A DNA stretch of 8,086 bases from Amoeboradix gromovi X-113 (lineage: Eukaryota; Fungi; Sanchytriomycota): NCBI GenBank assembly GCA_018985225.1, contig JADGIF010000468.1, positions 1 to 8,086 on the forward strand, written 5' to 3'. Under the pieces are notes generated by a model, which saw only the letters and a program-made list of their open reading frames with translations, was not told the origin of the DNA and did not search any database. The position numbers and the translations under genes are program-made. Positions 3,122 through 8,009 of the stretch are shown here, one piece after another; position 1 is the first letter of the stretch, and the number at the start of each line of letters is the position of its first letter.

Positions 3122-4411
3122 TTATTCAAGTTGAAATTTTATAAATCTTTCTACAACACTCTGCCTGGCTCTTCGCCTCATTTCCAGCTTGTCGTTTGTT
3201 GATATCTCGAACAAGAGTGAGTATATTATATTGGAATACTCATCTTCTGTTGACGCCAGATATCCAATACCTGGTCTAACTATGTCCATTTTTGGTCCTC
3301 CACTGTTGTTTGCTACAACCAAGCATCCGCTAAACATGTATTCAATTATTCCTATTCCAAAATGCTCATTATGCATTGTATGTAAACCTATGTCTGATTT
3401 GCTTAATATATGAACCAACACTGTATGAGGTGCATTTACTAAAAATGTGACATATTTGTCCATTTCCAAGTCTAAAACAAGTGCCTTGAGTTCTTCAACT
3501 CTCTTTAGGTCTTGACGATTTCTAGCACCTCCAATTAGTGTCAAATGTGGAAAAAAGATTAGATGATTTTTTCTTGCTTTTAATATGACTTTATGAAATG
3601 AACGAATTTGCAAAGAATGATTCTTCTCAGGCCGAAATTGACCCACGCTAGTTATGTCATATCCACTTCGAGCCAGTGGAATTTTTAACAACTCAGTGGA
3701 TTGGCACGGGGGATAAACTATTCTGCTGTTGACACCCCATAACGAATCAATGTGCTGCTTAGTCCAAGACGAATTAACGTAGATTTTAGATGGAACTTTA
3801 CCACATTGCGAGTACCAGTTGGCATACCATTTATAATACCACAATTTAAAAACACTTATAAAAGGTATTTTGGCCACCAGGTTGCTGTTGTTAAAAGAAC
3901 TTTTTTTAGACGATACAAAAGATATCATATCAGTGCTTATTGTTGGGTAATGAACGTAGCATATAACATTAACATCGTAGAGCTTAGCTAATTTATAACC
4001 AAAGGCAAGACCAGTGGTGTCAATAAAGACAGATGGTAAGTAGAGTTGTTCACAACAATCACCAACAAAAATAATGCTTCCGAAAGCCTGACCTAAGAGC
4101 GTTAACAAGGGATACCTGCTACTATCGAAGTAGTCTCTATTAATAACAACAAATTTGATGTCTCTTGTCAACTTAATGTTAAATCTCTCCTGGGCGTCCT
4201 TGAGAATCGACCTTTGCTTTGATGTACAATAAACAATTACATTTGAGTCCAAACCTGATATCCAAGTCCACAAAACCAGCTCGCCTCCACCCATTGCGTC
4301 CGGATACGGATGTAAAAATCCAACAGTATTCTCCAATACTCTTTTCTTTTTATGGGTATACGCTTTGATATAAGCAACAACCATAAAGAAGAAGCTTGAA
4401 ACCAGAGACAT
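3122..4411 (-). CDS. ALG11: GDP-Man:Man3GlcNAc2-PP-dolichol alpha-1,2-mannosyltransferase (GT4)
   Basis: Motifs FLHPY....GGGE.VLW, FIDTTGLAF, YVHYPTISTDM, NSSWT..HI..LW, SVGQFRPEKNH.LQ, the EX7E motif in HTMHNEHFGIGIIEYM, and NSGGPK.DIV. The ORF-track start at 4462 is TTG; the first ATG at 4411 gives 429 aa beginning with a hydrophobic anchor (MSLVSSFFFMVVAYI). Confidence 0.95.
   Translation of the reverse strand: MSLVSSFFFMVVAYIKAYTHKKKRVLENTVGFLHPYPDAMGGGELVLWTWISGLDSNVIVYCTSKQRSILKDAQERFNIKLTRDIKFVVINRDYFDSSRYPLLTLLGQAFGSIIFVGDCCEQLYLPSVFIDTTGLAFGYKLAKLYDVNVICYVHYPTISTDMISFVSSKKSSFNNSNLVAKIPFISVFKLWYYKWYANWYSQCGKVPSKIYVNSSWTKQHIDSLWGVNSRIVYPPCQSTELLKIPLARSGYDITSVGQFRPEKNHSLQIRSFHKVILKARKNHLIFFPHLTLIGGARNRQDLKRVEELKALVLDLEMDKYVTFLVNAPHTVLVHILSKSDIGLHTMHNEHFGIGIIEYMFSGCLVVANNSGGPKMDIVRPGIGYLASTEDEYSNIIYSLLFEISTNDKLEMRRRARQSVVERFIKFQLE
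4043..4119 (+). repeat. First copy of the 77-bp direct repeat, within ALG11
   Basis: Identical to 8010..8086. Confidence 0.97.
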
Positions 4412-5671: not shown

Positions 5672-5810
5672 GATATCCCCATGATTAGTCCTCTAAAATA
5701 AATTACAATCGCACTCAGCAAGTCTCCAGTAAGCTCGTTTTCACATTAAAATTCCGTTTAGTTTAAGCTCAGCATATAAAGAATTCTACTTGAGTAAAAA
5801 GGTATAAAAA

Positions 5811-5816
5811 TTTATT
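5811..5816 (-). terminator. Possible polyadenylation signal for the transporter-pyruvyltransferase gene
   Basis: AATAAA on the minus strand about 20 nt after the stop, followed by a T run. A similar AATAAA plus T run overlaps the GH114 stop at 2487-2492 (+). Weak evidence in AT-rich DNA. Confidence 0.3.
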
Positions 5817-5835
5817 CAGTCAGCTCAAAGATCTC

Positions 5836-7902
5836 TTAATTATCTAATTCCTTCAACTCCGCCAAGTATTTCTTCACTTGGGCTATTGCAAGCGTCATGT
5901 TGTGTCCTGGTGCGTAGTATCTTCTCACTATGTTAGAATTACAGTTTTCTCCTCCAAAGTGCTCCATCAAGCTAGTTACTCCGTGAATCTTGCCATAGTT
6001 GTTCTCCAGACACACCACAGGCTTGTCCATTAGTAGTGCTAGTATACTGGCGTGCAGTCTGTCTGTCAAAATCACTTTGTATCCGCAAAACAGTCTATTT
6101 GCTCTGTCCAGACGATACCTAGGAAGCCTATGCTGTTCTTTTGGCTTTCCGTTGTAAAAAGGATTGTTCAACTCCCCCATGTTCTCCAGTTCTTCCAGAT
6201 CGCCCCAATCTATGATATCAAATATTAATCCGCTTTCTCGTAATAGCCACTCATGATCCGACTTGTTACTAGATAAGCTCTCCTCATCCCTCCTCTTCAA
6301 ATACAACACATCCTTATTTGGATCGCATGACGGATCGACATGTCCCAACATAAAGGCACCATCAGGCATTAAATATCGATTTAAGTTTTCAGAAAACTCT
6401 TTGTCCAATATGGTTTTGCTTCTGTTGCTACGCACCGTTAAATGCAAATCACCAAATTCCCTAAACTTCAGAGCATCATCATGCATAATTTCTTCATCCT
6501 CGTAGTAAATACTTTGAGGCAAGAAAATAAGGGTGTTTTTCTTGTATTTATCCATATAGGAAATTCGAAGTTCAGTGGCCCATCGATAGAGATCTCCCCA
6601 GTTGCCTCCCCCATGCATTAGAATTGTGTTGTTTGAGAAGTCATACAAATCAATATTATCTTTACATTCTGTACTTGTGCATGTCGTATCCACAGTGATA
6701 CCCATTCTGCTTAGCGCAAGTTCTTCACCAAGCCAAATTAATGAATCCCCCACGTTTTCATGGTCAGGGGCATCAATAAGAACCACTGACTGATGATAGG
6801 GAATCATGTCTCGTAGAATGCCTGTGTATTGGGCTTGGACAGCAGATATACAGCTTTGTCTACGTATCAAACGTGTTGATTCATCTAATCGCATGGATTT
6901 GCTAAATAAGGGGCTATCTTGTTGGTACGCTTGCAGAATGAAAACACTTGCTAATAGAAGCAATGCAGTGTTCAAAAGCACGGACTGGGATTTGGAAGAA
7001 TTGGGTTTTTTGTTGCTTGCGTTCCTAGGCTTATAAATGCCATACAAACATACCCCGGCATATGCTATGGTTATTCCCAGAATGTTCATCGAGTTCACAG
7101 GGTATTGAAAGTATATCCAGGCATATATAATTGATATAATTCTCTTGAATACATTGGCAATTGCATGGGACACAGCGTGTAGCTCGTTTAGAATCATAAA
7201 GCTCGCTAAGTTGTACATGAAATAGTAAACGCTGGCAAGAAAGAGATGAACAAGATCTGCATTACTCGGGAGCGTAATTCCGAAGAACAGGCTGTATATC
7301 ATTAGCAAAAAAAAGCAACCATACCCCGAAAGTCCAGATAACAGTATGAAGGCTTCAAAAGGTGATAGCTCGCTCTTCTTGAATAATACACTGCGGCAGC
7401 ATGTCACAAATACACTAGCAACGCTAACATACAAAGCAGACCAGCTGAAGCTAACGTCTGTTAATGTGGCTATAGCAACTCCAACCGGAATTGGACATAG
7501 GCTGAGCCATTGTTTCCCATTTAAGCTGGAGTTCAACAAGTACATAGAAAGCAGCCCACTAATGAATGGCTCAAATGCTTTTATGGTGTAGTTGAATTGA
7601 ATGCTACTGTATTTGAATGCGTAACAGGTAAACAATGCATTACATAAATGAAACAAACTTAACTGAACAAAAGGTCGAAACTTACTGTACCTGCTTCCAC
7701 TCATAATTTTGCTCTTGTCGCTTATCAGCTCGTACTTCGATTTTGGGGAGTAAAATGGTAAAAGTATCATGCTAACGAACAAACTACCAAAGCAGGCTAA
7801 AAATATATTATTGCTTTGAAGGAACTGTTTAAGCTGTATGTTACTCAGCGATGTAAAGATGTACCAAACAAGAATCCAGCTAATAAGTTTTAGTGTCTTC
7901 AT
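5836..7902 (-). CDS. Fusion protein: TPT/SLC35E-family phosphate translocator (putative PEP transporter, aa ~1-290), a single transmembrane helix (aa ~308-326), and a polysaccharide pyruvyltransferase domain (aa ~370-660)
   Basis: One uninterrupted 688-aa ORF. N-terminal part is multi-pass, with WY...LSN...K, YTIKA.EPF, PI.VGVAIAT.TD.SF, R.V..KK and YN..SF.IL.....VSHAIANVFKRII.I.....F..PV...N.LG..IA..GV.LY. C-terminal part has D.PDHENVGDSLIWLGE, HGGGNWGDLY, LPQSIYY, VRS..S, PDGAF.LG, RRDEES and TDRLHASIL..L..KP....NNYGKI, typical of Pvg1 and bacterial exopolysaccharide pyruvyltransferases. Confidence 0.9.
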   Translation of the reverse strand: MKTLKLISWILVWYIFTSLSNIQLKQFLQSNNIFLACFGSLFVSMILLPFYSPKSKYELISDKSKIMSGSRYSKFRPFVQLSLFHLCNALFTCYAFKYSSIQFNYTIKAFEPFISGLLSMYLLNSSLNGKQWLSLCPIPVGVAIATLTDVSFSWSALYVSVASVFVTCCRSVLFKKSELSPFEAFILLSGLSGYGCFFLLMIYSLFFGITLPSNADLVHLFLASVYYFMYNLASFMILNELHAVSHAIANVFKRIISIIYAWIYFQYPVNSMNILGITIAYAGVCLYGIYKPRNASNKKPNSSKSQSVLLNTALLLLASVFILQAYQQDSPLFSKSMRLDESTRLIRRQSCISAVQAQYTGILRDMIPYHQSVVLIDAPDHENVGDSLIWLGEELALSRMGITVDTTCTSTECKDNIDLYDFSNNTILMHGGGNWGDLYRWATELRISYMDKYKKNTLIFLPQSIYYEDEEIMHDDALKFREFGDLHLTVRSNRSKTILDKEFSENLNRYLMPDGAFMLGHVDPSCDPNKDVLYLKRRDEESLSSNKSDHEWLLRESGLIFDIIDWGDLEELENMGELNNPFYNGKPKEQHRLPRYRLDRANRLFCGYKVILTDRLHASILALLMDKPVVCLENNYGKIHGVTSLMEHFGGENCNSNIVRRYYAPGHNMTLAIAQVKKYLAELKELDN

Positions 7903-8009
7903 CTACTTGATGTTGAGAAAATGCGAAATCAAAGTATATAATGAAAATCTATCCAATCATGTTGGCCCTATGAACATCAAGCATCTAATTGGTACAAACC
8001 AGTGTGATT

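Follow-up and report, generated by a model that had tools for sequence, protein, structure and literature searches.

Can one polypeptide bring the donor of a glycan modification into the secretory pathway and also use it there? The question is raised by a gene of Amoeboradix gromovi X-113, a sanchytrid, that is, an alga-parasitising fungus. The gene lies in an 8,086-nt stretch of contig JADGIF010000468.1 (assembly GCA_018985225.1), which is called the window below. In Schizosaccharomyces pombe, phosphoenolpyruvate (PEP) enters the Golgi lumen via a transporter, and the pyruvyltransferase Pvg1 and its PEP suppliers Pet1 and Pet2 are separate proteins (PMC4872226), as a sequence-only reading of the window had noted for Pvg1 and Pet1. 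Here, in contrast, the enzyme and the transporter form one chain, in which the transporter is predicted to do likewise.

The gene occupies positions 5836..7902 on the minus strand as a single open reading frame of 688 amino acids that runs from ATG to TAA with zero internal stops, in agreement with the initial description. Pfam assigns residues 5-287 to the TPT family (PF03151; E 1.9e-37, 129.6 bits versus a curated cut-off of 30) and residues 383-635 to PS_pyruv_trans (PF04230; E 1.5e-24, 87.8 bits versus a gathering score of 25.3), and a sequence search of the PDB returned two significant relatives, one for each half: Pvg1 (5ax7) and the Galdieria transporter GsTPT2 (5y78). The AlphaFold2 model (mean pLDDT 91.5, pTM 0.73) consists of a helical bundle (residues 2-290), one further helix (302-329) and an enzyme domain of alpha/beta type; Foldseek searches with this model rank the same two structures first. 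From these data, the chain begins with a ten-helix DMT-fold transporter (residues 1-290, 7033..7902), continues through a basic polar linker (residues 291-307, 6982..7032) and an eleventh membrane helix (residues 308-326, 6925..6981), which resembles the type II anchor of Pvg1, and ends with a stem and a GT-B pyruvyltransferase domain (residues 327-688, 5839..6924). The two-domain architecture proposed from the letters alone, its layout of ten helices plus one, and the positions that it gave for the linker and the extra helix all hold.

The enzyme half aligns with 5ax7 with an E value of 1.1e-22 (chain offset 53), and Foldseek gave this GT-B structure as its top match (E 2.8e-12, TM 0.74 by target). 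The alignment equates Pvg1 D106, R217, R337, L338 and H339 with D386, R491, R615, L616 and H617, and D386, R491, R615 and H617 are invariant in all 15 aligned fusions. D106, R217, R337 and H339 of Pvg1 are the proposed binding residues for acceptor and PEP, and the D106A mutant is nearly inactive (PMC4872226; PMC6801904). The motifs N383-VGD, GGGN434 and D614-RLH are located where they had been reported, and a residue table confirms that the Pvg1-type active site is retained. The spacing of C351 and C654 resembles that of the Pvg1 disulfide C68-C373, of which the pair is probably the counterpart; both cysteines are present in 11 and both absent in 4 of the 15 fusions. The similarity to the S. 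pombe system thus extends over the GT-B active site, a membrane anchor ahead of the catalytic domain and a probable disulfide. One position differs: His168 of Pvg1 hampers the use of LacNAc, and its mutation to alanine raised LacNAc activity (PMC4872226), whereas the corresponding residue is already alanine here (A442) and serine in two orthologues. This replacement is a weak hint that the acceptor may differ or be wider. With its GalE gene and three GT31 genes, the host may be able to make a beta-galactose acceptor, despite the reported absence of the galactose pathway from sanchytrids (PMC8371127). The GalE gene (UDP-glucose 4-epimerase, contig C803) has a probable 19-nt GT..AG intron, read by eye at L028:1949-1967, that splits its NPYGRTK motif; a gene caller ignoring 19-nt introns would miss GalE.

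On which side of the membrane the enzyme lies depends on the eleventh helix. The N- and C-terminal ends of the ten-helix fold share one membrane side, and in Golgi carriers of this fold both ends face the cytosol. The 15 residues that precede helix 11 contain four K/R and zero D/E, and the linker is predicted to be cytosolic. The hydropathy of the helix peaks at 2.02, and in 13 of 15 fusions the peak reaches 1.5 or more; the enzyme half carries four N-glycosylation sequons. Taken together, the basic linker, the counterpart of the helix in 13 of 15 fusions, the cysteine pair and the four sequons favour a luminal enzyme.

Our preferred reading, to which we give a probability of about two in three, is that the protein is a secretory-pathway PEP/phosphate antiporter tethered to an enzyme in the lumen that consumes PEP and liberates phosphate. 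The single chain would then act as a glycan pyruvylation unit in the secretory pathway; by analogy with Pvg1, the organelle is probably the Golgi. The ten-helix domain, with both its ends in the cytosol, would perform a 1:1 antiport of the phosphate-translocator type, taking cytosolic PEP in and phosphate out, and the eleventh helix would take the chain over the membrane to place the GT-B enzyme in the lumen. There, the enzyme would use PEP to attach pyruvate as a ketal to a terminal sugar, a beta-galactose or a HexNAc-containing end, and the released phosphate could exit via the same chain as counter-substrate. The predicted outcome is surface glycans with negative charge.

The PEP/phosphate part of this reading can be examined against the solved structure of GsTPT2, in which phosphate is bound by K204, K362, R363 and Y339, H185 binds the carboxyl group of 3-PGA, and a bulky Phe at 262/263 disfavours PEP, the PEP translocator AtPPT1 having Asn instead (10.1101/169169). 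In the 5y78 alignment (chain offset 89), K204, Y339, K362 and R363 correspond to K108, Y230, K253 and R254, all of which are present, so the predicted phosphate site is complete. The motifs TIKA (residues 106-109) and NVFKR (250-254), whose basic residues the sequence-only reading had singled out, are found as placed, with these residues retained. Of the fused transporters, all 19 have K253 and R254, all 17 in which the position is covered have K108, and 17 of the 19 have Y230. The four stand-alone TPT-family proteins of the host, in contrast, all lack the full set: one has Q at the position of Y230 (C897), and in the other three G-K-x replaces N..K-R (C732, C1038, C415).

The carbon pocket is altered. 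His185 and Phe263, which lie in the pocket of the triose-phosphate-preferring subtype, are replaced by A89 and T167. All 16 fused copies that cover the position have lost His185, and every named fungal fusion has T, S or V in place of Phe263, much as the PEP-preferring PPT has Asn; both losses favour PEP as cargo. Overall, however, position 263 is non-Phe in 12 of 19 and Phe in 7, so its loss does not serve as a general marker for PEP. This leaves room for an unlikely, broader variant of our reading: a luminal pyruvyltransferase joined to a phosphate-type antiporter that accepts triose phosphate, 3-PGA and PEP alike, or mainly removes luminal phosphate, with PEP perhaps supplied by another carrier. 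Such a variant would suit the seven copies that retain Phe263, the four further TPT-family proteins of the host, and the fact that the four conserved residues contact the phosphate group only and leave the carbon part unfixed (10.1101/169169). It fits poorly with the uniform loss of His185 and with PEP being the sole soluble substrate that the attached enzyme is known to require.

PF03151 contains many nucleotide-sugar transporters, and the closest ESM Atlas clusters are generic EamA, TPT and nucleotide-sugar ones, so the fused domain could instead be a nucleotide-sugar transporter feeding a glycosyltransferase that makes the acceptor. We consider this improbable, as the full phosphate site of GsTPT2 is retained and a profile built from the fused transporter domains plus one stand-alone relative separates the classes well, with 189 bits on GsTPT2 versus at most 44 on SLC35B1, LicB and the CMP-sialic acid carrier. 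The tree also sets the fused domains apart from the G-K-x members of the host on a 99/99 branch. Foldseek gave an rmsd of 3.1 Å for GsTPT2 (TM 0.79 by target) versus 4.6-7.5 Å for nucleotide and nucleotide-sugar carriers, making GsTPT2 the best match in both sequence and structure among the solved transporters. The PEP/phosphate reading is thus supported by the profile scores and by a phosphate site that is kept in the fused but not in the host stand-alone members.

With the plastid phosphate translocators (GsTPT2 and plant PPT) the domain has in common the ten-helix DMT fold and the four phosphate-binding residues. Unlike them, it belongs to a non-photosynthetic host, begins at residue 5 with no leader or transit peptide, has lost His185 and exchanged Phe263 for Thr, is fused to an enzyme, and scores far under the cut-off of the plastid translocator family TIGR00817 (91 bits versus 318; the stand-alone C897 protein of the host scores 170). 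In sequence, it looks built like a phosphate translocator with an altered carbon pocket, and we do not class it as a plastid translocator. A word-index search with the transporter domain alone returned either zero matches or three proteins only. A stand-alone intronless TPT-family protein, P0161 (L024:1501-2478), encoded on a metagenomic contig of 2 Mb, retains His185 and Phe263 as well as the phosphate site, in which R-R replaces K-R.

The host genome contains three PF04230 genes, two of which, besides the fusion, have no recognisable transporter. Both of these paralogues have hydrophobic N-terminal regions without the K-R motif; the one on contig C1173 (L002:988-2856) encodes 622 amino acids, with several unrecognised membrane segments followed by an intact pyruvyltransferase domain. 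In the tree, the enzyme domains of the paralogues cluster with the sanchytrid fusions. Neither profile comparison nor the ESM Atlas linked their N-terminal regions to the transporter. The ESM Atlas structure search returned enzyme-domain matches only. In pairwise shuffles of N-terminal regions against the transporter, P0007 (z up to 6.0) and C1109 (z up to 3.9) showed a weak relationship, whereas C1173, P0005 and P0006 showed no link. These sequences are most simply explained if the gene was duplicated and the transporter then decayed, while one intact copy would feed a shared luminal PEP pool. As the paralogues have no recognisable transporter, tethering is not required in every copy, which argues for co-location and against strict channelling. 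The same proteins, with several hydrophobic segments but no K-R motif, would also suit a transporter domain that is chiefly an anchor or sorting device and whose transport activity is dispensable; this is more improbable still, given that the binding residues are near-invariant among fusions that are merely ~25% identical.

The 3' end of the fusion gene (5808..6110) is apparently common with the C1109 paralogue, as judged from DNA identity and unitig depth. The first 105 nt of C1109 (G000:C1109:1-105, L003) are 98% identical to window positions 6006-6110, where the paralogue runs off its contig, and the unitig at 5808-6102 has a depth of 90 versus 45-77 in the adjoining unitigs. In a metagenomic relative (L007), which has the same gene order, a paralogue lies directly upstream of the fusion. 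The overlap and this gene order suggest a tandem pair with a homogenised 3' end, and the conserved order also marks the locus as native fungal DNA. The neighbouring genes in the window, identified with Pfam as DPH1, ALG11 and a GH114 gene, were not taken as functional partners. Positions 207-331 of the window show a 74% DNA match to a TnpB/Fanzor-like fragment at L002:3841-3973 (C1173).

The fusion is found well beyond this contig. Three orthologues align over the full length at 56-59% identity, the nearest named one (56%) being from Sanchytrium tribonematis. A search across 1.84 billion representatives revealed further distant proteins that match both halves (24-32% identity to the 688-aa protein), both domains being confirmed with Pfam. 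They include Spizellomyces punctatus SPPG_09475 (KNC97094.1), in which TPT and PS_pyruv_trans lie in one chain with 32% identity over residues 79-664, three copies in Quaeritorhiza haematococci, and copies in the slime moulds Ceratiomyxa fruticulosa and Physarum polycephalum and in the choanoflagellate Stephanoeca diplocostata. Another copy, in assembly GCA_001179505.1, which we take to be Vitrella brassicaformis, lies beside a nuclear gene for the RuBisCO large subunit. By their names, the records from Ceratiomyxa and Physarum are transcript assemblies, and the Stephanoeca sequence set is presumably a transcriptome, so in these three species a single mRNA codes for both halves.

That two separate genes were joined here through assembly error or amplification chimerism is extremely improbable and, for the family, refuted: the genome was probably produced by multiple displacement amplification (PMC8371127) and the contig ends in a repeat of an internal 77-nt stretch, but the same fusion is collinear in three other sanchytrid-like assemblies, no unitig branches over the junction, and full-length fusions recur in Sanchytrium, Spizellomyces, Quaeritorhiza, Physarum, Ceratiomyxa, Stephanoeca and metagenomes, transcript-derived records included. 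The junction is crossed by a single unbranched unitig (6073-7890) in the only sequencing run found with this DNA; as the assembly may derive from that run, its support is not independent. Our search of sequencing runs found no RNA run containing the gene, and we found no compositional seam between the transporter and enzyme halves. A concealed tiny intron that might divide the gene was also considered: two GT..AG candidates of 19-22 nt, carrying a branch-like motif, are located at codons 142 and 654. They were rejected because both sit in stretches conserved as protein in the orthologues.

Upstream of the gene, the final 77 nt of the contig (window 8010-8086) copy exactly positions 4043-4119 inside ALG11. 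The unitigs contain two distinct 5' entries into the gene at 7890, one derived from ALG11 (depth 26) and one of 312 nt (depth 39) that comes from the shared 3' end at 5808-5837. This double entry may reflect a partial tandem duplication, a second haplotype or an amplification chimera, and the gene may also have upstream regions other than 7903-8009.

A single origin of the fused transporter domains was not rejected (AU p 0.434). In the enzyme-domain tree, in which the deep branches are weak, the amoebozoan and GCA_001179505.1 domains group apart from the fungal and choanoflagellate ones. The history of the fusion may be one of old inheritance with many losses, of repeated fusion or of gene transfer. 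Judging from its other fusions, to a polysaccharide flippase (PF01943), GT2 or GT25 (P0009, P0012, P0013, P0014, P0101, P0128, P0043), the pyruvyltransferase domain joins readily to pathway partners. It is possible, if doubtful, that the fused transporter belongs to a lineage of PEP/phosphate antiporters that is old, serves the secretory pathway of non-photosynthetic eukaryotes and was joined to the pyruvyltransferase before the split of fungi, choanoflagellates and amoebozoans. In that case, pyruvylation at the surface would be an ancient eukaryotic trait that has been overlooked, and host endomembranes would have contained, before plastids, a carrier with the complete phosphate-translocator site, a ready precursor of the plastid translocators, which are currently derived from nucleotide-sugar transporters (PMC5635587). 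As our trees left out plant translocators, Pet1/Pet2 and named SLC35E1, we make no claim on the origin of the plastid translocators.

Both halves are known, as is the two-protein pathway of fission yeast; the single-chain form is apparently undescribed. Our literature searches, with most subscription journals outside their coverage, found no paper on a transporter-pyruvyltransferase fusion, and database records of it carry automatic names only ('uncharacterized', 'sugar phosphate transporter domain-containing protein'). According to a 2019 review, information on pyruvylation in eukaryotes is scarce, and the cases listed there are confined to fission yeast, algae, a sponge and a sea hare (PMC6801904). 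Golgi complexes of nucleotide-sugar transporters and glycosyltransferases likewise couple donor import physically to the using enzyme; those complexes are non-covalent and use nucleotide-sugar donors, whereas here the fusion is covalent and the predicted donor is PEP (PMC6453868).

The fusion suggests a substrate for an orphan group of TPT-family transporters from eukaryotes without photosynthesis, and with it a single gene suffices to test PEP import into the secretory pathway. It would be a natural covalent model of how donor import is coupled to a Golgi transferase while phosphate runs in a closed cycle, and could provide a one-gene tool to add a sialic-acid-like negative cap to glycans. 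Its presence predicts that sanchytrids, chytrids, slime moulds and one choanoflagellate cap their surface glycans with pyruvate.
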